64,000 bases of DNA from Macrostomum lignano (taxonomy: Eukaryota). A program made the position numbers and the translations under genes. Location of the stretch: the NCBI GenBank assembly GCA_002269645.1, contig NIVC01001508.1, forward strand, positions 62,001 to 126,000. Direction: 5' to 3'. The notes under the pieces were generated by a model. It did not search any database. It was not told where the DNA came from and saw only the letters and a program-made list of their open reading frames with translations. Below, one piece after another: positions 14,947 through 54,379 of this stretch (within the stretch, counting starts at the first letter, position 1; each line of letters starts with the position of its first letter).

Positions 14947-17900
14947 ATGGCTGGCCGAGTCAACCCCGCATTCATGCAGCAGCAGCAGCAGCAGCCGGAG
15001 AACTGGATGCCGAAACCCAGCGGCGGCAGCGACTGCCCACCCGGGCTCGAGTACCTGACCCAGCTCGACCAGGTGCTGGTCAAGCAGAAGAAGGAGTTCT
15101 TTGAAAGTGAGTAGGCATTAACCTGCATTAGTCTGGCGCCACCGAGCATTAATAAATCATGCAAAACGCAATACCTGTCATTCCCCTCTATTTGCAGTGG
15201 TGACTGGCTGGGAAACGAAGAACAAGTACGTGGTGAAGAACTCCATGGGCCAGCAGATCTACTATGCTAAGGAGCGTAAGTGTTCAAGCCAACCTTTTTT
15301 TGTTGTTGCCAGGGCTTTAGCTAGACCTCAGCTCTGACTCACCCGAGAATTTGATCCAGGTTGACCCAAGCACTCGACCTAGGTTGACCCAAGCACTCGA
15401 TCCAGGTTGACCCAAGCACTCGACCCAAGTTGACCCAAGCACTCGATCCAGGTTGACCCAAGCACTCGACCCAGGTTGACCTAAGCACTCGATCCAGGTT
15501 GACCCAAGCACTCGACCCAGGTTGACCCAAGCACTCGATCCAGGTTGACCTAAGCACTCGATCCAGGTTGACCCAAGCACTCGATCCAGGTTGACCTAAG
15601 CACTCGATCCAGGTTGACCCAAGCACTCGACCCAGGTTGACCCAAGCACTCGACCCAGGTTGACCCAAGCACTCGACCCAGGTTGATCCAAGCACTCGAT
15701 CCAGGTTGACCCAAGCACTCGATCCAGGTTGACCCAAGCACTCGACCCAAGTTGACCCAAGTACTCGACCCAGGTTGACCCAAGCACTCGACCCAGGTTG
15801 ACCCAAGCACTCGATCCAGGTTGACCCAAGCACTCGACCCAGGTTGACCCAAGCACTCGACCCAGGTTGACCCAAGCACTCGATCCAGGTTGACCCAAGC
15901 ACTCGACCCAAGTTAAACCAAGCACTCGACCCAGGTTGACCCAAGCACTCGACCCAGGTTGAGCCAAGCACTCGACCCAGCTTGACCGAAGCACTCGACC
16001 CAGGTTGACCCAAGCACTCGATCCAGGTTGACCCAAGCACTCGACCCAAGTTAAACCAAGCACTCGACCCAGGTTGACCCAAGCACTCGACCAAGTTGAC
16101 CCAAGCGCTCCACCAAAGTTAACTAAGCGTGGCTCCCCACCGCGCCGCAGACTCTGACAATTGCCAGCGCCAGTGCTGCGGCAACCAGCGCGCATTCGAG
16201 ATGACAGTGGAGGACAACACGGGCCAGGAGGTGATCCACATCAGCCGGCCCTACAAGTGCATGTGCTACGGCCAGTGCTTCTCCTGCTCGAAGTGTTGTT
16301 TCGACACGGTCACCGTGGAGGCCCCGCCCGGCCGCGTGGCCGGCAAGGTGAAGCAGATCTACGGCTGCTGCGAGGCCAAGTACAAAATCGAGGACAAAGA
16401 TGGCGACACCGTGCTGTACATTGACGGACCGAGCTACTGCAAGTGCTACTGCCCCGGGGATGACATCCCGTTCAAGGTGAGTCAGGGTGATTCGTTCGGG
16501 CTCATGGGTCAGAATTCTGGTTGGTGGGTCAGGATTTTAATTGTTGGGTCAGGATTCTAATTGGTGGGTCGGGATTCTAATCGGTGGGTCAGGATTCAAA
16601 TTGGTGGGTCAGGATTCTAATTAGTGGGTCAGGATTCTAATTGGTTGGTCAGGAGTCTAATTGGTGGGTCAGGAGTATAATTGGTGGGTCAGGAGTATAA
16701 TTGGTGGGTCAGGATTCTAATCGGTGGGGCAGGATTCAAATTAGTGGCTCAGGATTCTAATCGGTGGGGCAGGATTCAAATTAGTGGCTCAGGATTCTAA
16801 TAGGTGGCTCAGGATTCAAATTAGTGGCTCAGGATTCTAATCGGTGGGTCAAGATTCAAATTAGTGGGTCAGGATTCTAATTGGTTGGTCAGGAGTCTAA
16901 TTGGTGGGTGAGGAGTCTAATTGGTGGGTCAGGATTCTAATCGGTGGGTCAGGATTCAAATTGGTGGGTCAGGAGTCTAATTGGTGGGTCAGGATTCAAA
17001 TTGGTGGGTCAGGATTCTAATTGGTTGGTCAGGAGTCTAATTGGTGGGTGAGGAGTCTAATTGGTGGGTCAGGATTCTAATCGGTGGGTCAGGATTCAAA
17101 TTGGTGGGTCAGGAGTCTAATTGGTGGGTCAGGATTCAAATTGGTGGGTCAGGATTCAAATTGGTGGGTCAGGATTCAAATTGGTGGGTCAGGAGTCTAA
17201 TTGGTGGGTCAGGATTCTAATCGGTGGGTCAGGATTCAAATTGGTGGGTCAGGATTCTGGTTTGTGGGTCAGGATTATAGCTCGTGTGCCGGTGCATGGT
17301 AGGTGAAGACTAGAGCAGGTGGGTCAATCAATGATAAGTTATAATATTAAACAGGCAATAAAACTTACTCGCATCTCAAACAGCTGGTGACAAAGGACAG
17401 GGAGCACGAGATCGGTCGCGTGTCCAAGCAGTGGTCCAACCTGCTGCAGGAGTACTTCACGGATGCGGACAACTTCGGTATCACATTCCCAAAGGATCTG
17501 CACCTGGATGCCAAGGCCACCATCATCGGAGCCTGCTTCCTGATTGTGAGTCTGAGCTTTGAGAGTGCAAAATGCCTTAGCGATATTTAAAGTGATTAAG
17601 TTTCTTTTAGCACCAAATTTCCAATTTCTCAACTTCCTGACTTCTCATGTTAAAATGAAGCAATTGCGTGTTTTCTCCGGGGTGCTGCACGCACAAGTTT
17701 GTTGTGAGAATGTTGGAAAAAGTATTTCTGGAGAGCAACAATGCTTGGGTCAACGTGGGTCGAGTGCTTGAGTCAACTTGGGTCGAGTGCTTGGGTAAAC
17801 TTGGGTCGAGTGCTTCGGTCAACCTGGGTCGAGTGCTTAGGTCAACTTGGGTCGAGTGCTTGGGTTAACCTGGGTCGAGTGCTTGGCTCAACCTGGGTCG

Positions 17901-23395: not shown

Positions 23396-24798
<1,403 letters not shown>

Positions 24799-27700: not shown

Positions 27701-27834
27701 ATGAAATGAAAGTATATTTTTTTAGCTTTAGTATTAGCCTTTTGCAAATGAAGTGTAATAATTTAAAAAAAATTAACTTTGATGTACAAGCTATTCTAAA
27801 CACATCAAATAATTTTTTAAAACTTGAAAGTATC

Positions 27835-29785
27835 ATGGCAGACAATGGGGAAAGTTTAAATTCGGAAGAGCCATCCAAGCCGGTGGAATTCACAGACAAT
27901 TTGAGCAATCCAAATGATGAAGATGATGACGAATCCACTGAGCCGTGCAGGTCCAACTCAGATGATTCTCAGCAGCCGCAGGCTCCGAGTCTGCCAGATG
28001 AGGATTCTCCTCAGCAGGAGCAGCAACAGCAATTGCAGTTGCAAAAGCAGCAACAACAGAAGCAGCAATTAGAATTTGTTGCAGACGATTTTGTAGCAAG
28101 GATTCGTGCAGCAAGCGCGGTGAAGTCTTCAATCAGCGGTTCCTCCATCAGCAGCTGGGCCTCGTCATCAAATTATGGCGCAGGTGGCAGTGCGGTGGCT
28201 GGTGCACCCGGCGTGGGAGTGAGCAGAAGCACCAGCTATCCTATTGGACTGCTGGCTCAGGTGGGTAGGGCGCTGCCTGTTGTTTTGCCTTTTTCTGCAT
28301 TGCCAAACTTGATAAGCTACTGCGAGTAGGCTGTTTGAATTTTTTTGAACCAACAGCAGAAAGTTTTTGATGAGAGATCCTAAAGACTTTAAACGAAATT
28401 AAATGCTATGTGCAAGCAAGTTACAAAGGTGGAGTGTGAGGCAGACTGACAGAGATACGGGGTCAAACAGGGAGATGAGATGGGGTGAGACAGGGAGATA
28501 AGATAGGGTGAGACAGAGATGAGATGCGGTGAGACAGAGATAAGATTTGGTGAGACAGGGAGATGAGATGGGGTGAGACAGGGAGATTAGATAGGGTGAG
28601 ACAGGGGGATTATATAGGGTGAGACAGGGAGATTAGATAGGGTGAGACAGGGGATTAGATAGGGTGAGACAGGGGGATTATATAGGGTGAGACAGGGAGA
28701 TTAGATAGGGTGAGACAGGGAGATTAGATAGGGTGAGACAGGGGGATTATATAGGGTGAGACAGGGAGATTAGATAGGGTGAGACAGGGGATTAGATAGG
28801 GTGAGACAGGAGGATTAGATAGGGTGAGACAGGGAGATTAGATAGGGTGAGACAGAGATAAGATGCGGTGAGACAGGGATAAGATGCGGTGAGACAGGGA
28901 TAAGATGCGGTGAGACAGGGATAAGATGCGGTGAGACAGAGATAAGATGCTGTGAGATAGGGAGATAAGATGGGGTCAAACAGGGAGATGAGTTGCGGTG
29001 AGACAGGGATAAGATGCGGTGAGACAGGGATAAGATGCGGTGAGACAGGGATAAGATGCGGTGAGACAGGGATAAGATGCGGTGAGACAGAGATAAGATG
29101 CTGTGAGATAGGGAGATAAGATGGGGTCAAACAGGGAGATGAGTTGCGGTGAGACAGGGGGATTAGAGGAGTCAAACAGGGAGATAAGATTGGTGAGACA
29201 GGGAGATGAGATGAAGTGAGACAGAGAGATTAGATAGGGTGAGACAGGTAGATGAGACGAGGCTTTTTAATTTTGACACTGAAAAAAGTTTACCTTTAAA
29301 ACGGCATTCATTGTATAGACGCCATGTTCACTACCTGCCTACTTTTAGTAGGCTGTAACGTGTATTGTAAAAATTATAAGAAGACTCGGAAGGCATATTT
29401 TTATGAATGGTTTGCTAAAATTTGACCTTTCTGTGACCTTCCCTTCCATTAGGTGACCCCCGACGATATCCCAGAGATCGATCCTCACGCACTCGCGGAC
29501 TTGGAGACCCACGCCAGGCGTTTATCCGATCAGCTGATCCACCTCACCGCCTCGCTTCGTGCCGGACTTCAAGCCGCCTGCGGCATCACTGCTCAGCACT
29601 CGCGGCTGCACAAACAGTCGGTTGATTCCGCCTGCGACACTGTGGAGACTGCCATCCGGCATATGTACGCTCTGATGGCCAGGTGCGAAGAAGTGGCCAG
29701 CGCCATGAGCTCTGTGCACCAGCTCAAGCACGATGTTGACAATGTGAAGAGAATTCTTGATCGGTTAGAGGCCTCTCTGCATTGA
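27835..29785 (+). CDS. BORCS6: BORC complex subunit 6 (lyspersin/DUF2365); exons 27835-28260, 29453-29785
   Basis: An acidic/Gln-rich disordered N-terminus is spliced in phase 0 to a helical C-terminus, PEIDPHALADLE...VDSACDTVETAIRHMYALMARCEEVASAMSSVHQLKHDVDNVKRILDRLE, which matches the BORCS6 C-terminal domain pattern. Confidence 0.75.
28455..29260 (+). repeat. About 21-bp purine-rich minisatellite in BORCS6 intron
   Basis: Units such as GGTGAGACAGGGAGATTAGATAG and GGTGAGACAGGGATAAGATGC. Confidence 0.93.
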
Positions 29786-29794
29786 GTTCTGTGT

Positions 29795-31140
29795 GCTATC
29801 GGATGGCGCCTCCCTGATGCTATCGGATGACCCCTCCCTGATGCTATCGGATGGCGCCTCCCTGATGCTATCGGATGACCCCTCCCTGATGCTATCGGAT
29901 GGCGCCTCCCTGATGCTATCGGATGACCCCTCCCTGGTGCCATCGGATGACCCCTCCCTGGTGCTATCGGATGGCCCCTCCCTGATGCTATCGGATGACC
30001 CCTCCCTGATGCTATCGGATGGCGCCTCCCTGATGCTATCGGATGACCCCTCCCTGATGCTATCGGATGGCGCCTCCCTGATGCTATCGGATGACCCCTC
30101 CCTGGTGCCATCGGATGACCCCTCCCTGGTGCTATCGGATGGCCCCTCCCTGATGCTATCGGATGACCCCTCCCTGATGCTATCGGATGGCGCCTCCCTG
30201 GTGCTATCGGATGGCCCCTCCCTGATGCTATCGGATGGCCCCTCCCTGATGCTATCGGATGACCCCTCCCTGATGCTATCGGATGACCCCTCCCTGATGC
30301 TATCGGATGGCGCCTCCCTGGTGCTATCGGATGACCCCTCCCTGATGCTATCGGATGACCCCTCCCTGATGCTATCGGATGACCCCTCCCTGATGCTATC
30401 GGATGGCCCCTCCCTGATGCTATCGGATGGCCCCTCCCTGATGCTATCGGATGGCCCCTCCCTGATGCTATCGGATGGCCCCTCCCTGATGCTATCGGAT
30501 GACCCCTCCCTGATGCTATCGGATGGCCCCTCCCTGATGCTATCGGATGGCCCCTCCCTGATGCTATCGGATGACCCCTCCCTGATGCTATCGGATGACC
30601 CCTCCCTGATGCTATCGGATGGCCCCTCCCTGATGCTATCGGATGGCCCCCCCCTGATGCTATTGGATGACCCCTGTCTGATGCTTCAGGCCCTTCCTTG
30701 ATGCTTCAGGTGGGATCTTGATGCTTCAGGTGGGATCTCCTTGATGCTTTAGGTGGGATCTTGATGCTTCAGGTGGGATCTCCTTGATGCTTCAGGTGGG
30801 ATCTTGATGCTTCAGGTGGGATCTTGATGCTTCAGGTGGGATCTTGATGCTTCAGGTGGGATCTTGATGCTTCAGGTGGGATCTGCTTGATGCTTCAGGT
30901 GGGATCTCCTTGATGCTTCAGGTGGGATCTGCTTGATGCTTCAGGTGGGATCTTGATGCTTCAGGTGGGATCTTAATGCTTCAGGTGGGATCTCCTAGAT
31001 GCTTCAAGTGGGATCTCCTTGATGCTTCAGGTGGGATCTCCTTGATGCTTCAGGTGGGATCTTGATGCTTCAGGTGGGATCTTAATGCTTCAGGTGGGAT
31101 CTCCTAGATGCTTCAAGTGGGATCTTCTTGATGCTTCAGG
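29795..31140 (+). repeat. Two abutting minisatellites (21 bp, then 20-23 bp) just 3' of BORCS6
   Basis: CCCTCCCTGATGCTATCGGATGA to about 30690, then TTGATGCTTCAGGTGGGATC(TCC). Confidence 0.95.
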
Positions 31141-31574
31141 ACTCCCTAAACATCGTTATACCTGTCTTCAATAGGCGATTCAGTTCACTGCTTCAATTAT
31201 ACAGAAAATCCTCAGTAATGTGTCTTTCTAGATAAGCAAATTTACTAAACATTGTTGTTTTTAATTCGAGTCTGAACTGCATGTACAATATGATTGTTTC
31301 TTAGTAGCAGTCTTGTATATAGTGATGACTTTGATCCTATTATGTTCATTAATCTATTTTGATTCTAACCTCTACCATATTGCACAGACTAATGTAAATA
31401 TACGCATGTCTGTTGGTCATAATAGTATATATATGGATTATGACTAATGTCTTCAATGGTATTCATCATTGTCCTTTGTAAATCACTTTCTTTCATTTTT
31501 ATATTCCTATTTTATTTTGACATCGAATAGTTATCCAGAATATAACTCTTAGCGATTCCGAGTTGGATTGAAAT

Positions 31575-32220
31575 AGGGAGATGGGGTAAGGCAGGGAGAT
31601 GAGATGTTGTGAGACAGGGAGATGAGATGGGGAGAAACAGGGAGATGAGATGTTGTGAGACAGGGTGATGAGATGTTGTGAGACAGGGAGATGAGATGGG
31701 GAGAAACAGGGAGATGAGATGTTGTGAGACATTGAGATGGATGAGGTGACAGTGAGGGAAGATGGGATAAGACACAGATGGATGAGGTGACAGTGATGGA
31801 GATGGGATAAGACACAGATGGATGAGGTGACAGTGATGGAGATGGGATAAGACACTGAGATGGATGAGGTGACAGTGAGGGAGATGGGATAAGACACAGA
31901 TGGGTGAGGTGACAGTGAGGGAGATGGGATAAGACACTGAGATGGATGAGGTGACAGTGAGGGAGATGGGATAAGACACAGATGGGTGAGGTGACAGTGA
32001 GGGAGATGGGATAAGACACTGAGATGGATGAGGTGACAGTGATGGAGATGGGATAAGACACAGATGGATGAGGTGACAGTGAGGGAGATGGGATAAGACA
32101 CTGAGATGGATGAGGTGACAGTGAGGGAGATGGGATAAGACACAGATGGATGAGGTGACAGTGAGGGAGGTGGGATAAGACACAGAGTCTGCGATGGATG
32201 AGGTGACAGTGATGGAGATA
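31575..32220 (+). repeat. Purine-rich minisatellite upstream of S49 gene
   Basis: Units such as GATGGATGAGGTGACAGTGAGGGAGATGGGATAAGACACA. Confidence 0.93.
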
Positions 32221-32301
32221 AAGTCAGTCTAAAAGTAGCATCAAAGACGCCACAGATTTGACTTACTGCGTGTGGCTCGTCTCGCACTCTGCAGCAGTGA
32301 G

Positions 32302-33425
32302 ATGCAGCGCTTCAAGGATGCCCTGTCCCGAGTGCCCGTGGTGCCGGTTATCAAGCTGTATGGCAAGATCGCTGCCCCCACCAGCGGCTACAGCCGGGGG
32401 GTGATCAACTACCAGAGTGTGAAACCCCTGTTGGCCAAGGCCTTCAAGCAGAGACGGCTGGCGGCTCTAGCTCTGAGGATTAACAGCCCAGGTGGCTGGC
32501 CTGTGAGTTTGACAGCTGCTGATTCTCAGGTGTGACCACTGCCTCACCTCCCCGATTCTCAGGTGTAACCACTGCCCCACCTTATTCTCAAGTGTGACCA
32601 CTGCCCCACCTTCCGATTCTCAGGTGTGATCACTGCCCCACCTCCCCGGGTGTGACCACTGCCCCGGCTCCCCGATTCTCAGGTGGGACCACTGCCCCAC
32701 CTCCCCGATTCTCAAGTGGGACCACTGCCCCACCTCCCCGATTCTCAAGTGGGACCACTGCCCCACCTCCCCGACTCTCAGGTGTGACCACTGCCCCACC
32801 TCCCCGATTCTCAAGTGGGACCACTGCCCCACCTCCCCGATTCTCAAGTGGGACCACTGCCCCACCTCCCCGACTCTCAGGTGTGACCACTGCCCCACCT
32901 CCCCGACTCACAGGTGTGACCACTGCCCCACCTCCCCGATTCTTAGTTGTGACCACTGGATATGTTAACACCTAAATCACGATGCCTAATCCTCTCTCCC
33001 AGTGATTCAGTGTGGCTGCTAATTCCCTCCCTCAGAGGTGCAAACCACCCCTCGCTCCCGCAGGCGCAGTGCGACCTCATTCGCAACGAGATCAACCGTC
33101 TGTCAGCAGAGCACGGCAACATTCCAGTGCTGGCTTTCATTGAGGACATGGCAGCCTCGGGAGGCTATTACCTGGCCTGCAGTGCCAGCGAAATCTATGC
33201 CAACAGGCACAGCCTCATTGGCTCCATCGGTGCCCTGGCGGTGCACGCTGACCTGCAGACAGCGCTGCAGGAGCGGGCCAGCCTGGCCCTGACTCTGCAC
33301 CGGGCGGGCAAGCGGAAGGCCATCTTTAATAATTTGGAGGCCGCCAGCCCCGAGTCGCTGAAGTTCACCAACTACATGCTGCAGGGCATTCACGCCGGGT
33401 TCATTGACGTGAGATGCTCACGTGA

Positions 33426-33500
<75 letters not shown>

Positions 33501-33519
33501 GCCTGTCTGCCTGTCTGCC

Positions 33520-33564
<45 letters not shown>

Positions 33565-33659
33565 GCCTGTCTGTCTGTCTGTCTGTCTGTCTTAGTGTCT
33601 GTCTGTCTGTCTGTCTTAGTGTCTGTCTGTCTGTCTGTCTTAGTGTCTGTCTGTCTGCC

Positions 33660-33724
<65 letters not shown>

Positions 33725-33743
33725 GCCTGTCTGCCTGTCTGCC

Positions 33744-33824
<81 letters not shown>

Positions 33825-33867
33825 TAGTGTCTGTCTGTCTGTCTGTCTTAGTGTCTGTCTGTCTGCC

Positions 33868-33940
<73 letters not shown>

Positions 33941-33943
33941 GCC

Positions 33944-34003
<60 letters not shown>

Positions 34004-34376
34004 CATCTCAAGTCTCATCCAGATCCGCTCTGCTCAACCTCAGGTGGTAAAGTCATCCCGAGGCGACCGGCTCAAAGGCGCCCCGGAGTCCGAGCTATTC
34101 GAAGGCGACATCTGGCTGGCCGACAAGGCCCAGCAGCTCGGCCTCATCGACGGCGTCGGCGACCTCGAGGATGTGATCGCCAAGAAGTTCGGCCGCAGCG
34201 CCCGCCTGGTGGACATCGGGCCTCGGGGCTGGGCGAAGTTTGCCTCGGGTGCCGCTGGGGCTTCCGACATTCTCCAGGCTGCAGCCGCTGGAGGCCTCTG
34301 GTCCTCTGCGGCGGCCGGCGACCTCACTGCTGGCGACGGCAGCGGCTTTCGGGGTGGACCGCCGCTGGCCGCGTGA
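32302..34376 (+). CDS. S49-family (SppA/SohB-like) Ser-Lys peptidase; exons 32302-32502, 33064-33408, 34044-34376 (about 292 aa)
   Basis: Motifs [56 protein letters not shown] and [22 protein letters not shown]. Two phase-0 GT-AG introns are filled with host-type repeats. Confidence 0.88.
32530..32960 (+). repeat. 33-bp minisatellite in S49 intron 1
   Basis: Unit GACCACTGCCCCACCTCCCCGATTCTCAAGTGG. Confidence 0.93.
33425..34003 (+). repeat. (TCTG)n microsatellite in S49 intron 2
   Basis: Direct inspection. Confidence 0.97.
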
Positions 34377-34739
34377 TTTATGACCCATGGTTTGGGGACA
34401 GGATTGACAATGAATTTATGGTTTCTTATCTGCCCAGTGAGCTCTGCAGTGAATTTTGCTCAGTTTATTATGACTGTAGCGTATTTCTGTCTGTTCTGTG
34501 TTTATCTATGTAATATAATCATGAATACTCATTTATTAATAAATACAGAATTAACCCGAATCGGCCCGTTTTAATTAACTCAACATTCTAGTGTTTTATA
34601 TTCAAAACCATTTATACATTTTTATGAGAAGAGTTTGGATCAAATGACTCAATTAAATGTCAGCCAGTGGCCGAATTTTCCGGGTTTTTGGTTGAAGTTT
34701 TTACTTGCTACTATCGAATATCGATGTTTCATAATATGG

Positions 34740-34917
34740 ACAGTCAGTCAGTTTGTTTGTTTGTTTGTTTGTTTGCTTGTTAGTTAGTTAGTTTTTTGTT
34801 TGTTTGTTTGTCAGTTAGTTAATTTGTTAGTTAGTTAGTTAATTTGTTAGTTAGTTAGTTAATTTGTTAGTTAGTTAGTTAATTAGTTAGTTAGTTAGTT
34901 AGTTTGTTAGTTCGTTT

Positions 34918-34961
<44 letters not shown>

Positions 34962-35045
34962 ATTTGTTAGTTAGTTAGTTAATTTGTTAGTTAGTTAGTT
35001 AGTTAGTTAATTTGTTAGTTAGTTAGTTAGTTAGTTAGTTAATTT

Positions 35046-35093
<48 letters not shown>

Positions 35094-35127
35094 ATTTGTT
35101 AGTTATTTAGCTCGTAGTTAGCTACTT

Positions 35128-35171
<44 letters not shown>

Positions 35172-35212
35172 AGTCAGTCAGTCAGTCAGTCAGTCAGTCA
35201 GTCAGTCAGTCA

Positions 35213-35263
<51 letters not shown>

Positions 35264-35445
35264 AGTCAGTCAGTCAGTCAGTCAGTCAGTCAGTCAGTCA
35301 GTCAGCCAGTCAGTCAGTCAGTCAGTCAGTCAGCCAGTCAGTCAGCTAGTCAGCCAGTCAGTCAGTCAGTCAGTCTGTCAGCCAGTCAGTCAGTCAGTCA
35401 GTCAGTCAGTCAGTCAGTCAGTCAGTCAGTCAGTCAGAGTCAGTC
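34740..35445 (+). repeat. Compound (TTAG)n/(CAGT)n microsatellite
   Basis: Direct inspection. Confidence 0.97.
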
Positions 35446-35994
35446 CCAAATACATACATTGTAAGAATATGCGTGTAAACGTGTTTACAACCCATAAGCC
35501 AGATTAGACCGTTTTAACAGAGTCATATGACTTTAAATTCAACCATATAGCTAGCAATATGCAATATGTATTCATATGTAAAAAGTGTTTAATAATTTTA
35601 GCTTGCATGGAAAAGGCTCATCTGGCATCTCCGCAGTCACATGCCTCACGAGTCGCTCAAGCTACTGCTCTTATCTTTGTATTGGATATTTGCCCTGGCA
35701 CTGTACTGAAGCACTGTACATACAGCCTATGAGCAGTTACTCAGAATCTTATCTTTGAGTAATGTTTACGCAGACTAACTAATTCACAGAGCACAAGTCG
35801 CAATTTTCTGTGGGAATATAAAACTCAAAATTGGGATTCATGTTTATTCTTAAGCGAGTAGTCAACTCAACCATTATTTGTAGTGACTAACTAAACACCT
35901 GCAAATTTTTTTTGGTAAGTATTACTTTTTTTAAAACTGCACAAATAGCTTGAAATGTGTCGAATTGGGAAAAACCTGAAGATCTTAACTTAAC

Positions 35995-37915
35995 ACATCC
36001 TGACCCTCACTGATATGGGATCCTGACCCTCACTGATCTGGCATCCTGACCCTCACTGATCTGGCATCCTGACCCTCACTGATCTGGCATCCTGACCCTC
36101 ACTGATCTGGCATCCTGACCCTCACTGATCTGGCATCCTGACCCTCACTGATCTGGCATCCTGACCCTCACTGATCTGGCATCCTGACCCTCACTGCTCT
36201 GACATCCTGACCTTAAATGATCTGACATCCTGACCTTTAATGATCTGACATCCTGTCCGTAAATGATCTGACATCCTGTCCTTAAATGATCTGACATCCT
36301 GACCTTTAATGATCTGACATCCTGACCTTAAATGATCTGACATCCTGTCCTTAAATGATCTGACATCCTGTCCTTAAATGATCTGACATCCTGTCCTTAA
36401 ATGATCTGACATCCTGACCTTAAATGGTCTGACATCCCGTCCTTAAATGATCTGACATCCTGTCCTTAAATGATCTGACATCCTGTCCTTAAATGATCTG
36501 ACATCCTGTCCTTAAATGATCTGACATCCTGACCTTAAATGGTCTGACATCCCGTCCTTAAATGATCTGACATCCTGTCCTTAAATGATCTGACATCCTG
36601 TCCTTAAATGATCTGACATCCTGTCCTTAAATGATCTGACATCCTGACCTTAAATGGTCTGACATCCCGTCCTTAAATGATCTGACATCCTGTCCTTAAA
36701 TGATCTGACATCCTGTCCTTAAATGATCTGACATCCTGACCTTAAATGGTCTGACATCCCGTCCTTAAATGATTTGACATCCTGTCCTTAAATGATCTGA
36801 CATCCTGTACTTAAATGATCTGACATCCTGTCCTTAAATGATCTGACGTCCTGTCCTTAAATGATCTGACATCCTGTCCTTAAATGATCTGACATCCTGT
36901 CCTTAAATGATCTGACATCCTGACCTTTAATGATCTGACATCCTGTCCGTAAATGATCTGACATCCTGTCCTGAAATGATCTGACATCCTGACCTTTAAT
37001 GATCTGACATCCTGTCCTTAAATGATCTGACATCCCGTCCTTAAATGATCTGACATCCTGTCCTTAAATGATCTGACATCCTGTCCTTAAATGATCTGAC
37101 ATCCTGACCTTAAATGGTCTGACATCCCGTCCTTAAATGATCTGACATCCTGTCCTTAAATGATCTGACATCCTGTCCTTAAATGATCTGACATCCTGTC
37201 CTTAAATGATCTGACGTCCTGTCCTTAAATGATCTGACATCCTGTCCTTAAATGATCTGACGTCCTGTCCTTAAATGATCTGACATCCTGTCCTTAAATG
37301 ATCTGACGTCCTGTCCTTAAATGATCTGATATACTGAACTTAAATGATCTGACGTCCTGTCCTTAAATGATCTGACATCCTGTCCTTAAATGATCTGACA
37401 TCCTGTCCTTAAATGATCTGACATCCTGACCTTAAATGGTCTGACATCCCGTCCTTAAATGATCTGACATCCTGTCCTTAAATGATCTGACATCCTGTCC
37501 TTAAATGATCTGACATCCTGTCCTTAAATGATCTGACGTCCTGTCCTTAAATGATCTGACATCCTGTCCTTAAATGATCTGACGTCCTGTCCTTAAATGA
37601 TCTGACATCCTGTCCTTAAATGATCTGACATCCTGTCCTTAAATGATCTGACGTCCTGTCCTTAAATGATCTGACATCCCGTCCTTAAATGATCTGACGT
37701 CCTGTCCTTAAATGATCTGACATCCTGTCCTTAACTGATCTGACATCCTGTCCTTAAATGATCTGACGTCCTGTCCTTAAATGATCTGACATCCTGTCCT
37801 TAAATGATCTGACGTCCTGTCCTTAAATGATCTGACATCCTGTCCTTAACTGATCTGACATCCTGTCCTTAAATGATCTGACGTCCTGTCCTTAAATGAT
37901 CTGATATACTGAACT
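35995..37915 (+). repeat. 23-bp minisatellite, about 1.9 kb
   Basis: Unit TGATCTGACATCCTGTCCTTAAA, preceded by CCTGACCCTCACTGATCTGGCAT variants. Confidence 0.97.
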
Positions 37916-38561: not shown

Positions 38562-38888
38562 ATGTCCAAGTTCCGACCAATTGTTGCTGTTGCATCTCTG
38601 CTTTTGTTGCTGCTCCTAGTAGTAGCACCGGACACCGCACTCGGCAAGATGCACCCGGAGCCCTGTTTTGAACCGGCTGACTTCTGTAGAGAGACCGGCC
38701 ACGGCGGCTTCACGTTCTCACCCGATGGCTGCAACACCTGCCGGTGCACTCAGGACGGCCAGCTGGAGAGCTGCACGATGGTGATGTGCCCGCAGGATAT
38801 GAGCGACAAGGCCTGGACTGATCATTGCGCCGAGCTGCGTCGCAAGGCTGAGGCGCCGATCCCAGTGCAGGAAGACGAAGCTCTGTAG
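38562..38888 (+). CDS. Secreted pacifastin-like Cys-rich protease inhibitor (single domain)
   Basis: A signal peptide (VAVASLLLLLLLVVAPDTALG) precedes C-x14-C-N-T-C-R-C-x3-G-x4-C-T-x3-C, which fits the pacifastin consensus except for a longer first loop. Confidence 0.6.
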   Translation: MSKFRPIVAVASLLLLLLLVVAPDTALGKMHPEPCFEPADFCRETGHGGFTFSPDGCNTCRCTQDGQLESCTMVMCPQDMSDKAWTDHCAELRRKAEAPIPVQEDEAL

Positions 38889-45638: not shown

Positions 45639-47103
45639 ATTAGCAGGCCAGCTCGGATCGCCCGAAGCTAGCACTTTCGCTCTCACCCAGCACTAGCCCG
45701 GCAGGGACTGCTGACGGTGGGCACCTCTGCGCGAGAACTGCTAAATCTGCACGAAGTGCGAGTCTCTTTCTCTCGTCTTAGTTATTTGCTTCTACGAGCT
45801 CAGCACCTCACCGAAGGCTGCGACTCTGCGAAGCTGGTGGCAGCACTACCTACGCTACGAGAACTAGTTTCTAAGAAAGCGGCACTTAGAGGTCACCGCC
45901 CTGCGCCAGGAGACCTACCAGGCCATCTCCAGTCGACATCGCAGAAGCCTGTACTTCACTGGTGGCAGCGCTCCTATTGAAGGCCTCTAGACAGCAACAG
46001 GCAAGACACATATATACACTTCAAGTGTTTAGTGTCTAAACGCCCACTACATCCAGACCGCAATTCTGGGAACAAAATAAAAATTTTAGCTAATGCCACT
46101 TGTGAGTATTTATAACTTTGGACTTATGAAATAAAAAAGAAGTAAGAAAATGAAACCTTGACATATCAACTACGTATCAATAAAATACAGCAGAGTACGA
46201 GTAACATGCTAAATTAAATGAATGGTAATCTTCACAAACCCAGATCGAATGTAATAATTGATTTTGTGATGATGTACCATCAGTGTTCACTCTGCAACAG
46301 CTTTCAATCCTTAACTCTGTATGCGACAATCCGAAGATTGGGCGATGCTATTTAAACCATGCAGTAATTATTTTCCTGTCGTAAAATATTGCTGACAAGG
46401 TGAAATATGGTCTACAGACATAAATTCGCTAAGAGGAGTGTATTGATTTCAATACATGGAGCCTTATTAATTTTGGCACCGGAAGGGAAGCCTAAATAAG
46501 AGCCAGGATCAGCACGCTTGATGCGCAACAAGGCGCAATTCGTCCAAGGCATGAGTCAGATCAGGGGTCAGCAACTTCCGGCCCGCAAAGCCTCTCTATC
46601 CGGCCCCCTCAGGTGCTTTTTAAACTTTACAATAGCAATCCGGCCTGCTTGTCTCTTTTCAGCTCTGCTTTTCTTTCTCCTCTCTTCTCTCCTCTTTTGT
46701 TTCCTCTCGGACGGATGCGGCACGACAATCAGCTTCTCGTGCTCATTGAACTGGTCTTAAACGTGCTCTACACGTTTCTATGTAGAAAATATATAAATAA
46801 ATAAGTTTTATGAAATTGGGCAAACAGAGAGGCCTGAATATGAAAATAGCGTGCACTCAGCAAGGAACCTTGACATAGTGTATCAAGCGCGCGTTTGAGC
46901 AAAGCACTCGAAAAAGAGGAATGTTGCCAGTTTCAGGTAAATAACCCGAAATTGAGCCCTGGATCCCAAATACTGTACAATCCAACTCTGTATTTGTGAG
47001 CAAAGCCAGAGCTCTATAAGTGTATAAAAGTTTGACAGCAAAAGGCAACAAAAATTGTTCCAAAGAAAAACTTCGCAAGTCCCTATACGTGAGGTATTTA
47101 AAT

Positions 47104-48864
47104 ATGGCGCACGACCTCGCAGCTCACAGCCGATCGCTGTCCTCAGCCATGGCGACTGCCGGGTTTCGCTCAACAAACGCAGCGGTGCAGAGCGGCCTCG
47201 CAATGGCAGCTGAGGAGCTGGGCCGACTGCTGGCTAAAAGCTGCCACATCTTTGGCAGCTACGCTGACGGCTGGGGCTCCAACCTGTGCTGCATCAATGG
47301 AGACGTCGCTCCAGACTCCGACATCGACGTGACGTACATCATGACAGACGCGAGCCAGCAAATCCACATTCACCCGCAAGTCGCTGACGGACAGCGGGCC
47401 GAATTTCGACACAACGACTGCCAGCTGACTGAGCCTGCGGAGTACGAGGACGGGCACGTCAAGGCGCGCGTTCGCAGTAAGGAAATTCTCGCTATAATAT
47501 CATACTAATGCATTAGATATGAAATTTAGATATGTACAGAAACGAAATATATCATCTACATCTGTCCTGAAAATGCAGTTTTAGCGCCGAATATCGCATT
47601 GGAAGTGTCGCAGATGTTCCCTGCAATAGACCTGATTTTGGCGCATTCCTGCTGCGGCTACCCTCACATCGAGCTGCTGCGGCCCGGATACAGGACTTGC
47701 ATGTCCGATGACATCATGAGGGCGCTCAGAGAAGAGGTGCTGGGCGAGTCGCCAAGGTGCCACGCCGTCAGCAGCGCGCCGCCCGGTCTGGAGGGCAGCC
47801 GACTTCGAGTGAGCACAACCCTGCTGGAAAGGTCCGTCATGCAGCATCTCACCACCGTGCAGGGTCAGTTCTTCATCCTCGTCAAGTTCCTCATCAAGAG
47901 GGTGATCGGCAGCAGAGTGAGCGGTCTGAAGACGTACGTTGGCAAAAACTTGCTGTTCTACATGCTCGACGAGACACCGGCGAAGGACTGGAAGTCGGAC
48001 AACCTGCTGGCGCTGGTGCAGCACTCGTTGGACATTCTCGTGGCAATGATGGAGAGCTCAGACTCCGAGGACGCCTGCATGAGACATTTTTTCTTGCGTG
48101 ACGCCAGAGTGTTCTTCAAGCGAGAGCACGACTCAAAATCGAGGATTGTAGCAGCCGTCCGTCAGTCAGCAGACAACCTGCTCAGCGACCTGAAACCGTT
48201 CAAAGAGTCTCTGCCTAAATTTGAGGTCAACGTGATTCTCCTTTCGTTTATCTCTTACTACCTTCTAGCAGTAGAGTTACTGGAATGCAGTGATTTCAGC
48301 TTGACAAAATACGCTTCCACAATGCAGACGGCAACTGAGCTTTGGTTAAGCATCAGGAGTGAAGCTCCGGTCGGGTCTCGGTCTGGCAGATTGACTCAAC
48401 TTTTGTCGGACGTCGAGCGCCAGATTCCAGACAGCGCTCAGGTCGGCAAAGCCTATCTCAGAGCCGCTGCTCTCTTCAAAATGGGTCAGCTTGTCACACC
48501 AGAGCTGGAGGAGGCGGCAGGTGCATCTCTGGGCTATATTCGGTGTCCGGAGGGCGACGACAACTCCCTGACGGTGGCTTCGGCCAAGTCACTAGCTGTG
48601 GACAAGCTTGTGCAGACTCGCTGCCTGGGTGTCACAGCGGCAAACGGCCAAATAGTGGACTGCCCGAAGCTGGTTAATGAATACGGGCCGGTTGTGTCTT
48701 TGTTTGAGAAGCACCTGTGCGGCTTCAAAGTGACGAGGCAGCAAATGCTTCTGGCCTTGGCTTCCGGCTCCCTTTGCGCAAGACTCTGGATGAGTAATGT
48801 GAGTGCTCAAGAGATCGGGGGTCGCTTGTTTATTATTGGAAATGAGCTCTATTCACTCTTTTGA
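47104..48864 (+). CDS. Mab-21/cGAS-like receptor (cGLR-type) nucleotidyltransferase; exons 47104-47476, 47579-48864 (about 552 aa)
   Basis: NTase motif FGSYADG...DSDIDV and a third acidic residue in AIDLILA. Mab-21 C-lobe motifs RVSTTLLE, LKTYVGKNLLFYML, W..DNL and CMRHFFL. One phase-1 GT-AG intron. Confidence 0.85.
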
Positions 48865-49759: not shown

Positions 49760-52700
49760 TGACAGAGGCGTAAGCGTAAGCAGGAATTCTAATTGGAGGG
49801 TGCCGCAACCTTGATTGGTGCAAATATTTGGTTTTCTTGTCTCTAGGTGGGCATCCCTTTCTCTTGGTGGGCGCCCAGCTGTCTCTTGATGTCCACGCCA
49901 GTCTGTTGGTAGGTGTAAAACGAGTGAGGTTTGAGATTGCGAGAAAACCGTTTTGGCGCTCAGGCCTGACAATTGATATATATTATAAGCCGAAGATTGA
50001 GGTGGGGTTTGGGTGTTGCACACGCACGGGCGCAACCGCACGTTGCAAACAACCACCCCCCATATACAAGCACGTACAAATATGACTACGAACAACATTA
50101 GAATATTTATAGGTGCATAGAATGCTCACACCACTTCCCCACCAGGGTTTAAAAGACACAACACAATGTCTATGGCAAAAGTTCACAGAAAATCAAGCAT
50201 TCACATTGGGCGATAAAAATCAGGAGGTCTTCGCTCTCTGGCCGACCGTCTCGGCAGCTGAGCCTCTTGCTGATTGGTCTCGGTCGCTGCAGCTGAGCCT
50301 CTTGCTGATTGGTCTCGGTCGCTGCAGCTGAGCCTCTTGCTGATTGGTCTCGGTCGCTGCAGCTGAGCCTCTTGCTGATTGGTCTCGGTCGCTGCAGCTG
50401 AGCCTCTTGCTGATTGGTCTCGGTCGCTGTCTCATCCGGTCCGCCGTTACCGTCGAACAGCTGCACCCAGGCATCAGGCGCCTGGAGCTGAGGGTCAACC
50501 AGTCCGTCAGCAGCCTCATCTGCGGTAGCCTGCAGGTCGTCGCCGGGCCGTAAGGAGTTGCGCCGTTCCACAAATGGTTTGAGCCGGTCGTGGTGCACCA
50601 CCTGCCTGCGTCGCATCCGCACGCCGGGACCCGAGGCCGGCCGCACTCGGTAGTTGACCTCGCCGAGCCTCTTCAAGATGATGTACGGCCCGGTCCAGCG
50701 GTTACTGAGGCTTTTTGATCTGCCAGGTTTCACCACCTTGCAGCTCAGCATCACCAAGTCGCCCTCTTTGTACGGCCGGAACCGAGTCTCCATGTTGTAC
50801 CGCTCGTTGCGCTCGGTCTGTGACGCCTGCAGTTGCTGATGGACACGCGCCCGGCTGTCCAGCAGGCGCCTCTGAGTTGCCTCTGCAAAGTCCAGCGCAT
50901 CAGTGAAGCCATTCAATGCTTTGGGCAGCTTCGAGTCGATTGGCAGCCTTGGTGGCCATCCGTGCAGCGTCTGGTACGGCGACAGGCCCGTGGTCGAGTG
51001 CACCGAGCTGTTGAAGGCCCACGTGACGAAGGCAAGTTGGAGGTCCCAGTCGTCCTGATCCTCTGCCACAACCGTCGCTAGCATGTCACCAAAGGTTCGG
51101 TTTCCGCGCTCGACCAGGCCGTTGCCGCTGGGATGGAAAGGCAAAGTGCGGCTTTTCTGCATGCCGAGCCGCTGGCACAGGGACTGGAACAGATGGCTTT
51201 CGAATTGACACCCTTGGTCGCTGTGGATTGCGTCTGGGACGCCGTGCCGAAGCGCTACCTGCCTGACCATAGCGTCGGCCACCCGCTCAGCCTCGATGCT
51301 CGGTAGAGCGCAGGTCTCCATCCACTTTGAGAAGCAGTCAAAGATGCTCAGCACGTAACTGTTGCCTCGTGGTGTCCTTAGCAGCGGACCCTTGATATCG
51401 ATCTGGACCATCTCCCATATGGCCTCGACGGCAGTGGAGTCGCTTGCAGTGGTGATCGCTGCGGCCGACTGCTGTTCTTCCGCCGAAGACAAGCGGCGCA
51501 GCTGGCGACCAGTTCTTGACGTCGTTGTGCATGCCCGGCCACCAGCAGCGGTCGGCGAGCTTGTCCAGCGTTCGGTCTGTGCCGAGGTGACCGCTGCAGG
51601 CGGCGTCGTGCGCGTCAGCCAGGAAATGCGCACGCAGGTGGCTGGGCACCACCGGTTTGCCCTGCCGGACCAGCTCACCGTGTTGCCCGATCTCGATGTC
51701 GCCATTTGCTATGAATTCTTCGAATCGCTGCTGACAGCCTTTGGACAGGTGGACGAAGCTGTCACTGATCGCCTTGAAGACATTCTGCAGAAGGCTGTCT
51801 CGGAGCTGCTCTGCCAGGAAGTCATCGCGATTTGCTAGTTGAGTGACAGCCGTCCGACTGAGCAGGTCTGGCACCACGTTCTCCCGCCCTGCCGATAGCA
51901 GAGCGCGAAATTGAACTGCTGGATGGTGTCGAGCCAACGTGCCAGCCGACCCTCTGGCTCCTTGGTCTGCAGCAGGCCCTTGAGCGGCTGGTGATCGGTA
52001 ACACAGTGAAGTCTTTCACGTTGCACAGGTAGGCTCTGAAGTGCTTGAGACTCCAAACCAAGGCGAGCAGTTCCCTGTCAGTGGCCGAGTAATTTCGTTC
52101 CGCCTTGTTGAGGGTCCTGAAGGCAAACGCCACTGGAAGCTCCGCGTCTCCGTAACGCTGGCAGAGAACCGCACCCACTGCGATGGCGCTGGCGTCGCAG
52201 CTCAGGACAAATGGTCGGCTGAAGTCCGGCAGGCGAAGCACAGGTGCTCGCCCAAGTTGGTCCTTGAGCGTCTGGAAGGCCGTCTCGCACTCGTCTGTCC
52301 AGGTGAAGCCCGTCTTCTGTGTTGCAGCATGCAGTGGTGCTGCTGTCTTGCTGAAGTCCCTGATGAATCTGCGATAGAAGCACAACATACCGATGAATCG
52401 TCGCACCTCCTCGGCAGAACTTTGTTACTGAATCTTGGCCAGGGCCTCCACTTTGTCCGGATCCGGCCGAATTCCTTCCCGGCTGACGATGTGGCCCAGG
52501 TACTTCACGCTCCTGTGAGCGAACACCGACTTGTCCTTGTTGAGCTTCAGTCCCGCAGCTCGCAGCCTGTCAAAAACTTTGCGCAGGCTGGCCAGATGCT
52601 CTTCGAAGCTCCGACTGAACACGATCAAGTCATCCACGTAGACTAGCACCTCCTCCCAGGTCAGGCCGGACATAACGAGCTCCATTAGCCTCTGGAAGGT

Positions 52701-54379
52701 CGCAGGAGAGTTGCAAATACCGAAGCCCATCTTCTTGAACTGCATAAGGCCTCGCGTGGAATAGAAAGCAGTCTTGTAGCGGTCTGCCTCGTCGACCACG
52801 ACCTGGTTGAGCCCCTGCTTGCAGTCGATGGTGGTAAACCAAGAGCAGCCCGCCAGAGCATCCATCGATTGTTGCAGGTGCGGCAGGGGGTAGGCGTCCT
52901 TGATGGTCACAGCGTTCAACTGACGCCAGTCGGTGCATAGGCGGATGTCGCCGCTCTTTTTCCGGACGACGATCAGATTGCTGGCCCAGGGCGAGTTGGA
53001 CGGCTCAATGATGTCGTGCTCCAGCATCTGGCCGATTTTCTGGTCGACCTGGTCACGAACCGGCAGCGGAATCGGTCGCTGGCGCTGCTTGTAGGGCTCG
53101 CTGTGGAGCCGAGGTCGTACTCGTGAGTGCTGAATAGGTCACCGTTCGCCTTGAGCAGTGCCAGTAGTCTCTGCCTTTCAGCCGCATCCAAGTCAGGGTT
53201 GACATCCCAGCAGTCCGACTGCTTGACTGTGCCAGCGCTGTTGTTGATCAGGTCGGCAGCTTCAAAAGAGCCGACGGCCTTGTTGGCGTAGAGCAGCACC
53301 TCCTCGGAGCCTAAATTGCACACCCGGACTGGAATCTTCTGATCAGCTGAAACGGTCAAAACTCTCGAGACAAGCAAACCAGTCGCTGGTAAAGTTGGCG
53401 TCGGGCTCGAAGATGCCTTGCTCGTCTTCCGACTTGACGCGGAGCCACACCAGCTTTTCGCTGCGTGCTGGAACACTTGTGTTGCTTTCCACTCGAGCAA
53501 CGAGGGTGCCGGTCACCATTCGGACGCTTGAGCTGCTGTTGAAAGAACGGGACTTTCTCTCCGTTGAGGCATACGGTCCTACCAACGATGTCGATCTGAA
53601 GCTCTCGGGTGGCTTGGGTGATGAAGTCCATGCCGAGGATGAGATCAGACTGATGTTCTCCACCACGTTGAGCTCGTGGACGACCTTGACTGACTGGCCG
53701 ACTTGAATTGTGGCTCGGGAAATCCCGATGCAACTCAGGCGGCCACCATCGACCGAAGTCGGGCAGCAGCTTCACCGGGCTCGATCTGAAGGCCGCAGAC
53801 TTGCGCGAGGCTGCGGCTGATCAAGGATGTCTGTGCGCCAGTGTCGAGCAGGAAACTGACCTCCTTGCCTTGCAGAAGCGCACGCACGAAGATGGAGAGT
53901 GCAGATTGGGCACTTGATTGACGGGTTGGAGCTGGCCCTTCGCTGCCAACCCTCAGAAGTTTCCCGACGGCCGAGCCTTTGACGGACAGACAGCCGCGCC
54001 GTGGCCCCAGCCGGAGCAGTTGAAGCAGCGACCTTGGCCCTGAGATCCGCCAGCAGGGCACCGGCGGGCGATGTGGCCTTCTTACCGCACCGAAGCAGCC
54101 TGATGACCGCTGCTGCTGATCTCTCTGTCTGCCGCCACCGCGTCCTCTCGCGCTGCCGCCCCTCGTCACCGCAGCCGTCAGGGTCTCCAGCTGCTGCTCC
54201 AGCCGTGCCAGTCGATCTTCAACCATCGCCACTGCGGGCGAGTTGCCTGGTTTGCATTTTCTCGCGATTTGCTCCAGCCTCGTGGCCTGCTCGACCAGCT
54301 CCTCCAGCGTGCAGGAGTCCAGGTCCCTGTCCTTGAGCAGGGTGTCGCGTATTTCCGCAGTCATCAGCTGAAGTCGATA
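49760..54379 (-). mobile_element. Ty3/Gypsy LTR retrotransposon, 5'-truncated and frameshifted (gag CCHC, protease, RT, RNase H, integrase, 3' LTR)
   Basis: Protease FLLDTGA, RT with YVDD (52425-53027), RNase H CDAS...DRELLAL (51822-52406) and integrase IHSDQG...GLVER (50170-51705). A polypurine tract lies at 50131-50144, followed by an LTR starting TGTGAG at 50130 and probably ending about 49760. Domains are split across several frames. Confidence 0.92.
50257..50430 (-). repeat. 35-bp tandem repeat in the Gypsy integrase tail
   Basis: About 5 copies of GCTGAGCCTCTTGCTGATTGGTCTCGGTCGCTGCA (plus strand). Confidence 0.9.

Follow-up and report, generated by a model that had tools for sequence, protein, structure and literature searches.

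The stretch of DNA considered here, referred to as the window, comprises 64,000 nucleotides (nt) of the genome of the flatworm Macrostomum lignano (assembly GCA_002269645.1, contig NIVC01001508.1, positions 62,001 to 126,000 of the forward strand). Comparison of window positions 22296-44376 with this contig (172,791 bp) showed no base that differs. The element in question is a gene for a bacterial-type peptidase of family S49, which lies between the host gene BORCS6 and a gene for a small secreted pacifastin-inhibitor-domain protein. The original prediction, made from the letters of the sequence alone, had presented this gene as a single-domain S49 protease split by two spliceosomal introns filled with repeats and adjoining BORCS6, and had read it as an old, domesticated horizontal transfer. 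The structure of the locus was confirmed (Table 1): both introns are in phase 0 with GT..AG borders, and the C-terminal exon of BORCS6 ends 2.5 kb upstream. The protein and its bacterial homologues are collinear, without gaps, across both intron sites. The 33-bp minisatellite of intron 1 has no other site in the window and the repeat of intron 2, (TCTG)n, recurs in it at 24313-24436; no other S49 fragments were found in the window by tblastn.

The gene model has a public counterpart in the GenBank protein PAA67107.1 (BOX15_Mlig027671g3), which consists of the two residues SE followed by exactly the 292-residue predicted splice product. Its coding sequence (CDS) is 5'-partial and begins at window position 32296, 6 nt before the ATG and right after an AG preceded by a pyrimidine tract. 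The GenBank models of this assembly derive from a genome-guided transcriptome based on RNA-seq, with evidence for trans-splicing and poly(A) addition, and 38.8% of M. lignano genes are trans-spliced (PMC5730564); the start of the S49 gene fits a spliced-leader acceptor, which would make its transcript a trans-spliced one. Since PAA67107.1 equals the predicted product and the models are RNA-seq-derived, transcription of the gene and use of the predicted splice sites are supported indirectly. Public annotation describes it only as "hypothetical protein" or "Peptidase_S49 domain-containing protein."

The assignment of the product to family S49, of MEROPS clan SK, is firm. Pfam Peptidase_S49 (PF01343) matches residues 85-229 and scores 93.3 bits, well over its cut-off of 24.9 (E = 1.9e-26), and the motifs named in the original prediction are all in place: NSPGG at residues 61-65, the nucleophile Ser99 in MAASGGYY, found in the same context in Bacillus subtilis SppA, and Lys152, the last and third basic residue of AGKRK. 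GSIG is present as well. In the HMMER alignment to the B. subtilis structure 3RST, an SppA crystallised as the K199A variant, Ser99 falls on S147 and Lys152 on position 199; the sequence matches in the PDB are SppA 3RST and 3BF0, with E ~ 1e-17. The catalytic Ser and Lys are invariant across 88-118 homologues (the Lys in 118 out of 118), and an alignment of 88 homologues has 24 columns without any variation, every one of which is retained in the worm protein. The protein matches the consensus of the same 88 sequences (NSPGGSPxQS, EDVAASGGY, LGLIDG) save for W66 and C70. The predicted reading of the conserved GGSP as GGWP was borne out as well, and the change is a singular one, given that none of 118 bacterial homologues has W at the corresponding position, where 106 have S, 10 have A, one has M and one has T.

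In the AlphaFold2 monomer model, which has a mean predicted local distance difference test (pLDDT) score of 83, the core exceeds 90, residues 121-165 score about 70 and the Ala/Gly-rich tail stays below 55. The top 20 Foldseek matches to this model are all SppA (E 1e-20 to 1e-14), the best being 4KWB and 3RST (E 1e-20) with template-modelling (TM) scores of 0.81-0.84, within a span of 0.79-0.84 for B. subtilis SppA, and ClpP comes behind them; the worm protein is thus modelled with the ClpP/crotonase-like alpha/beta fold of SppA. The protein scores under the NCBIfam equivalog cut-offs of TIGR00706 SppA_dom (117.5 against 155.45), TIGR00705 SppA_67K (91.4 against 311.45) and SohB NF008745 (70.8 against 259). 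Furthermore, no segment resembling a transmembrane helix or signal peptide is present (the maximum 19-residue Kyte-Doolittle mean is 1.17), and in the alignment there is no N-terminal extension relative to the bacterial proteins, the N-terminus being collinear with that of the soluble bacterial short forms. Because of these sub-threshold scores and the missing membrane anchor, the protein is a member of S49 and not an SppA or SohB in the strict sense. The resemblance of its PVIKL.G.I start and its length to short alphaproteobacterial S49 proteins, noted in the original prediction, holds in the genome matches, which are ~265-300 residues long and begin with PVV.V.RL.G.I.

Relatives were sought among 5.8 billion protein clusters (word-indexed HMMER search), 1.84 billion representatives (exhaustive HMMER scan) and 185,579 prokaryotic species genomes, as well as in the JGI metagenomes and IMG/VR. 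In the first of these, M. lignano's own copies match with 92-99% identity and the next matches reach at most 46%, the named ones belonging to Pseudonocardiaceae (Amycolatopsis, Allokutzneria, Sciscionella) and Alphaproteobacteria (Sulfitobacter, Bradyrhizobium, Defluviicoccus, Roseobacter). The exhaustive scan returned a single cluster above 50% identity, the worm's own, with the next again at 46% or less. The best matches among the prokaryotic genomes are 37-45% identical and come from Pseudonocardiaceae and from Rhodobacterales, Parvibaculum, Rhodospirillales, SAR116 and Rickettsiales; the JGI metagenomes gave no match above 45% and IMG/VR none above 35% identity. In the 120 clusters nearest to the worm protein, as in the other match lists, M. 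lignano is the only animal named, and no other flatworm was returned by the protein databases, whose coverage of congeners is unknown. The view that S49 is of bacterial type and not a standard metazoan family is in agreement with these results, in which identities above 46% are confined to the M. lignano copies and the other named top matches are bacterial.

The contigs that carry the close matches show dense, typical bacterial gene contexts, and a recurrent neighbourhood of polyprenyl synthase, S-adenosylmethionine (SAM) methyltransferase, S49, glyQ and glyS is seen in several of them (L005 5803-12103, L007 5422-11996, L008 and L011). This conserved S49-glyQ-glyS arrangement hints at a housekeeping role in Alphaproteobacteria that is seemingly uncharacterised. 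Two other readings were considered and rejected. Family S49 includes phage prohead proteases, and a phage or viral origin was discarded on the IMG/VR identities of 35% or less and on an NCBIfam head-maturation protease match of only E = 3e-4. Matches with N-terminal extensions (P0143, P0156, P0213 and others) had been entertained as eukaryotic forms with targeting peptides; those with a name, P0156 and P0213, are beta- and gammaproteobacterial.

Neighbour-joining (NJ) trees of 271 and 507 sequences recovered the commonest sister taxon of the worm protein in only 22% of bootstrap replicates, and a maximum-likelihood (ML) placement was therefore made with custom code, using a Gonnet-derived rate matrix, a four-category gamma distribution (alpha = 1.0) and a fixed 139-taxon NJ backbone whose branch lengths had been optimised. 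Sequences included as controls were placed correctly, each with the relatives already known for it. The worm protein was placed on a bacterial clade formed by P0155, P0172 and P0237 with a cumulative likelihood weight ratio (LWR) of 0.997, which becomes 0.70 when residues 124-165 are masked, the remaining weight going to neighbouring lineages; alternative placements are worse by 15.6 log-likelihood (lnL) units for a protist clade, 11.4 for the clade of P0142 and 13.7 for the Amycolatopsis clade, the deficit for protist clades ranging over 11-17 units. P0155, P0172 and P0237, the first NJ sister groups, had been considered as possible eukaryotes, an idea rejected on their contigs, which are bacterial and of the type of proteobacterial metagenome-assembled genomes. 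They form a long-branched clade that also lacks the FG, ERR and DPF motifs, with replacement residues not in common with those of the worm, and the 80 GTDB loci returned for the clade included no close named genome. The gene is alphaproteobacterial in type and a bacterial donor is favoured; the ML placement prefers this divergent, probably marine proteobacterial clade to the small protist clade. Of the BLASTP and phylogenetic comparison suggested with the original prediction, the lack of a comparable metazoan homologue among the matches and the bacterial placement agree with the proposed transfer, but NJ support for any sister group does not exceed 22%.

A second copy of the gene, PAA87489.1, is found on the 701-kb contig NIVC01000227.1 (locus L012); it is collinear with the first and has the same intron positions and splice sites, its introns being shorter in their repeats (272 nt for intron 1 and 495 nt for intron 2), and there too a pacifastin gene lies downstream (15473-15799). 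A third S49 copy is annotated on a 333-kb contig, and at least three Mlig_3_7 copies carry the 292-codon open reading frame (ORF) unbroken. Such multiplicity fits the known redundancy of the M. lignano assembly (PMC5730564). Between the window and L012 the coding sequence is 98.9% identical (99.5% in exon 1) and the 3' flank 93.5% identical, that is, 6.5% divergent. The 10 differences in the CDS are synonymous in seven cases and non-synonymous in three, which gives a pS of 0.031, a pN of 0.0046 and a pN/pS of 0.15 (binomial p = 0.004 against a neutral expectation of 74% non-synonymous changes); over these 10 substitutions the gene shows purifying selection between the copies.

The composition of the gene is close to that of its host. 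Its GC content at third codon positions (GC3) is 0.79 and its observed/expected (o/e) CpG ratio 0.79, compared with 0.70 and 0.85, respectively, in the pooled host exons of the window, and with a CpG o/e of 1.04-1.41 in all but one of 15 bacterial homologues similar in GC content. Its relative synonymous codon usage (RSCU) correlates with that of the host exons at r = 0.86, as against 0.34-0.79 with four bacterial homologues. On account of this host-like CpG content and codon usage the gene looks ameliorated.

From this evidence we conclude, with a probability of roughly 70%, that the gene is a nuclear M. lignano gene descended from a bacterial one, an alphaproteobacterial-type short soluble S49 peptidase acquired by horizontal transfer and since domesticated. 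Of the wording "old, domesticated transfer," domestication is upheld by the selection test together with the host-like CpG and codon usage, whereas "old" is supported only by comparison with the recent duplication of the locus and by the introns that the gene has gained. Several points weigh against the conclusion. The selection test comprises just 10 substitutions; no sister group exceeds 22% NJ bootstrap; the ML placement depends on custom code, on a matrix derived from Gonnet and on an NJ backbone that was held fixed; and, as the worm branch is long and the favoured sister clade divergent, long-branch attraction may have contributed to it. Moreover, 69 columns show a conservation of 90% or more in the 118 bacterial matches, and 21 of these are changed in the worm protein; the changes cluster at the Lys152 segment and the C-terminal W.RFGL is gone; with that segment changed and modelled at a pLDDT of about 70, activity or oligomerisation may be altered. 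Lastly, the top BLASTP match is P0309, from a probable protist clade, with a marginal lead (191 bits, against 187 and 186 for bacteria), and mitochondrial SppA homologues are reported in Acanthamoeba and Andalucia (PMC7050145).

The changed positions bear on a reading in which the gene is an expressed horizontal acquisition whose product is no canonical S49 peptidase and serves as a pseudo-protease, a peptide binder or an enzyme of altered specificity. As many as 15 of the 21 changes, the other 48 columns being retained, fall within residues 124-165 around Lys152 and include F129A, G130D, G140S, R143L, R144T, T147R, D156N, P157N and F158L; the residues lost comprise G130, R144, D156 and F158, which are 100% conserved, and R143 and P157, conserved at 98%. 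As a consequence the subfamily motifs FG (129-130), ERR (142-144) and LDPF (155-158) read AD, ALT and FNNL, respectively, and in place of W.RFGL the worm tail ends in ...GGPPLAA. The unique Trp beside the glycines of the oxyanion hole, unseen in the 118 homologues, the low confidence of the Lys arm in the model and the scores under the NCBIfam SppA_dom and SohB cut-offs point in the same direction. However, the universal S49 elements NSPGG, AASGGY, GSIG and Lys152 are intact, and purifying selection is seen between the copies. Active B. subtilis SppA likewise lacks FG, ERR and DPF, which are therefore features of a subfamily and not part of the universal catalytic apparatus. We regard a non-canonical product as unlikely.

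A eukaryotic source is disfavoured and, in our view, rather improbable. It would take the form of a proto-mitochondrial S49/SppA remnant lost in nearly all animals or of a transfer from a protist, such as a prey organism or commensal, and the worms are in fact fed diatoms in culture (PMC10468722). The alphaproteobacterial character of the family, with Rickettsiales among its members, is what one would look for in a gene inherited from the mitochondrion, and the Acanthamoeba homologue in mitochondria is reported as verified by mass spectrometry (PMC7050145). In addition, this bacterial family seems to have a small clade in protists. P0122 is encoded on ~1-kb single-gene, mRNA-like contigs (L003 1-1104 and L004 1-1003, from Logan SRR7796775 and SRR7796777) with a CA-rich 5' leader and a gccaccATG start, and these probable eukaryotic transcripts encode the same short S49 as P0125, a transcript of Aplanochytrium stocchinoi from MMETSP; P0122 and P0125 form a clade with P0309 in 51 of 60 NJ bootstraps, and P0309, the top BLASTP match, has AGKRKA and GGYYLAC in common with the worm protein. 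Against such a source, ML placement on the protist clade carries an LWR of only ~1e-6 even with the arm masked, and each of the putative eukaryotic sequences is far closer to Alphaproteobacteria (about 50-58% identity) than to the worm protein (40-43%). No other named animal occurs in the top 120 clusters, retention by vertical descent would imply that the gene was lost independently many times in Opisthokonta, and the N-terminus of the worm protein has nothing added to it, relative to the bacterial proteins, that might function as a presequence. The Acanthamoeba and Andalucia mitochondrial SppA and the anthozoan S49 stood outside the sequences used for the trees and the placement. A more specific version, in which the gene is the sole known animal survivor of the proto-mitochondrial S49/SppA-like protease still working in Acanthamoeba and Andalucia mitochondria, seems to us quite improbable; if true, an alphaproteobacterial heirloom would have reached Metazoa and been lost independently almost everywhere else.

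A further S49 clade (P0142, P0022, P0427 and P0428), with proteins of 330-380 residues that end in ...WAASGA.NIRW, is possibly eukaryotic, as suggested by a faint G-patch protein that adjoins P0142, together with a 2,818-residue ORF, on contig L010 (1-9189; ENA ERZ4198739). As a sister of the worm protein this P0142/P0022 clade was set aside, its placement being 11 lnL units worse.

The gene was also considered as a decaying relic of an old transfer, in the form of a pseudogene that is still transcribed. In favour of this, the C-terminal motif has disappeared along with many conserved residues, and frameshifts occur in the older models P0001 and P0002 (UniRef A0A1I8JA66 and A0A1I8HWY1). The frameshifts, however, are due to single-base homopolymer indels relative to the Mlig_3_7 copies, seen only in the older assembly, in a T-run of exon 2 (33330-33345) and a G-run of exon 3 (34228-34235); the indels, which produce a spurious alternative donor and a spurious C-terminus, are probably assembly errors; the frameshifted C-terminus of P0002 and the shortened exon 2 of P0001 were accordingly rejected as real isoforms, the differences being of 1 nt in homopolymers and three Mlig_3_7 copies matching the frame of the window. 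A relic is also at odds with the intact reading frame in the several copies, with a synonymous to non-synonymous ratio of 7:3 where neutrality predicts about 1:3, and with the retention of the catalytic dyad and of all invariant columns, and we hold it to be very improbable. Bacterial contamination or a chimeric assembly, to which the bacterial-like protein might point, as might the indel errors that the frameshifts of P0001 and P0002 reveal in early M. lignano assemblies built on PacBio data, is effectively refuted by the two GT-AG introns at exact, gap-free positions, to which the original prediction had already appealed, by host genes on both sides within 2.5-4.2 kb, by the recurrence of the gene, its introns and its pacifastin neighbour on an independent large contig with the 1-7% divergence typical of a duplicated genome, by the transcript-derived annotation and by the host-like CpG and codon usage.

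The remaining features of the window (Table 1) are eukaryotic. BORCS6 and the S49 gene may belong to one transcriptional unit. The pair of ORFs with a Mab-21 domain may represent a cGAS/Mab21-family gene of the flatworm, and the pol domains of the Ty3/gypsy-type retrotransposon lie on separate ORFs, so that the frame is broken between them. The intergenic space around the S49 gene is packed with tandem repeats (28459-32219 and 34742-37911), and many of the repeats near the gene yield long spurious ORFs in several frames.

Table 1. Features of the S49 locus and of the surrounding window (positions are those of the window).
Feature	Position	Strand	Details
S49 gene	32302-34376	+	3 exons of 201 + 345 + 333 nt; spliced CDS of 879 nt encoding 292 residues
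Putative spliced-leader trans-splice acceptor and very short 5' untranslated region (UTR)	32293-32301	+	AG at 32293-32294 after a pyrimidine-rich tract; predicted
Exon 1	32302-32502	+	67 codons, residues 1-67; ATG at 32302; bacterial-like N-terminus; NSPGG oxyanion-hole motif, then Trp66 (codon 32497-32499)
Intron 1	32503-33063	+	561 nt, phase 0, gtgagt...cag; mostly 33-bp minisatellite, 13.6 copies, 32521-32958
Exon 2	33064-33408	+	115 codons, residues 68-182; Ser99 codon 33157-33159; GSIG; Lys152 codon 33316-33318; divergent "Lys arm," residues 124-165
Intron 2	33409-34043	+	635 nt, phase 0, gtgaga...cag; nearly all (TCTG)n, 33426-34003
Exon 3	34044-34376	+	110 codons and TGA (34374-34376), residues 183-292; C-terminal half of S49 domain; Ala/Gly-rich low-confidence tail without the bacterial W.RFGL end
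3' UTR	34377-34543	+	AATAAA signal at 34538-34543, 162 nt past the stop codon
BORCS6, upstream host gene	27787-29785	+	268-residue model; C-terminal exon 29453-29785, Pfam E = 3e-32
Small secreted pacifastin-inhibitor-domain protein, downstream host gene	38562-38888	+	4.2 kb from the S49 gene
Phospholipid scramblase exon	16129-16560	+	Pfam E = 4e-27
Two adjacent ORFs, Mab-21 HhH/H2TH-like domain	47020-47508 and 47599-48864	+	Pfam Mab-21_C E = 3e-5
Ty3/gypsy-type retrotransposon pol	50170-54397	-	Separate ORFs: aspartyl protease 53735-54397, reverse transcriptase 52425-53027, RNase H 51822-52406, integrase 50170-51705
Tandem repeats upstream	28459-32219		23-bp array 28459-29257 (inside BORCS6); 24-bp x37 29794-30685; 20/109-bp 30695-31140; 40/82-bp 31735-32219
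Tandem repeats downstream	34742-37911		(AGTT)n 34742-35302; (AGTC)n 35128-35445; 23-bp x83 35995-37911

The history that we propose for a gene of bacterial origin would start from the horizontal acquisition of an alphaproteobacterial-type short soluble S49 (SppA/SohB-like) peptidase gene and its insertion between BORCS6 and the pacifastin gene. Two phase-0 spliceosomal introns would then have been gained, later to be inflated by host tandem repeats, and a host-like codon usage and CpG content would have been acquired after integration; the gene would subsequently have been copied in a genome duplication and kept under purifying selection. Its product would be a cytoplasmic or organellar protein of 292 residues, with neither signal peptide nor membrane anchor. 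In the known SppA structures the S49 protomers form a ring, and the Lys of a neighbour completes the active site made by the Ser and the oxyanion hole. By analogy, the worm protomers would be expected to assemble into a ring or dome. Ser99, with the NSPGG oxyanion hole, would there attack the peptide bond, and the general base would be Lys152, carried on an arm that extends into the adjacent protomer. Most likely, peptides that are short or unfolded would be cleaved without a need for ATP, either in the cytosol or perhaps in mitochondria, and the remodelled Lys arm together with Trp66 may shift specificity or assembly. We thus infer that the protein forms oligomers and is catalytically active, and likewise what its substrates are, where in the cell it acts, that its transcript is trans-spliced, and from which donor and how long ago the gene came.

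The closest known systems are the short soluble S49 proteins of Alphaproteobacteria and Pseudonocardiaceae, annotated as "S49 family peptidase," "SohB" or "SppA" (for example in Amycolatopsis azurea, P0004, Sulfitobacter, P0051, and Bradyrhizobium, P0096), to which the worm protein is 40-46% identical over ~230 residues. Common to both are a length of 265-300 residues, the PVV.V.RL.G.I start, the missing membrane anchor and the motifs NSPGG.PxQ, EDxAASGGY, GSIG, AGxxK, SRG.RL and LGLIDG. Unlike its bacterial relatives, the worm gene is interrupted by two introns, sits among eukaryotic genes, is host-like in codon usage and CpG, and encodes Trp66 in place of Ser or Ala; it lacks FG, ERR, DPF and W.RFGL and lies outside the bacterial neighbourhood of polyprenyl synthase, methyltransferase, S49 and glyQS. 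With the better known SppA enzymes (B. subtilis 3RST and 4KWB, and Escherichia coli protease IV, 3BF0) the protein has in common the fold and the aligned Ser/Lys dyad, "MAASGGYY" being identical in B. subtilis; it differs from them in an identity of only 22-25%, in lacking the N-terminal transmembrane segment and in being a single-domain protein, in contrast to the tandem-domain E. coli enzyme. SppA assembles into octamers or tetramers and acts on signal peptides, properties for which the comparison with the worm protein covers its sequence and monomer model only.

Other bacterial-type S49 genes have likewise been reported in nuclear genomes of eukaryotes. Plants have a chloroplast SppA, and to this are added the mitochondrial SppA of Acanthamoeba and Andalucia and the anthozoan S49. 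The last of these, the "peptidase S49" candidate A. digitifera_15871, has also been read as a horizontal transfer (PMC4878875). The 120 clusters nearest to the worm protein, with scores of 147 bits or higher throughout, include none of these genes, whose relation to the worm gene is therefore remote at best; they probably represent separate acquisitions. Horizontal gene transfers (HGT) into bdelloid rotifers, nematodes and arthropods bear the same signature as the one described here, consisting of foreign best matches, gained introns, host linkage, ameliorated composition, expression (for the worm gene supported indirectly) and purifying selection. A text search of an HGT compendium (PMC13342648) gave no mention of Macrostomum, flatworms or S49; literature text searches retrieved no paper on this gene (including under the names Mlig016275 and Mlig027671) or on any HGT in M. 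lignano, and in the literature search no S49 was found in the papers on flatworm degradomes. The kind of event is itself known, and it is the gene family and the host lineage that are new among the intron-bearing bacterial genes domesticated in animals.

The gene would add a clean, well-anchored bacterium-to-animal transfer in a genetically tractable flatworm. To our knowledge animals otherwise lack the S49 family, and for this reason a role of such a Ser/Lys peptidase in vivo, in an animal cell, is without precedent; transgenesis in M. lignano makes this role testable. Furthermore, the remodelled Lys arm and the unique Trp by the oxyanion hole offer a natural experiment in the adaptation of a self-compartmentalising bacterial protease to a eukaryotic host.

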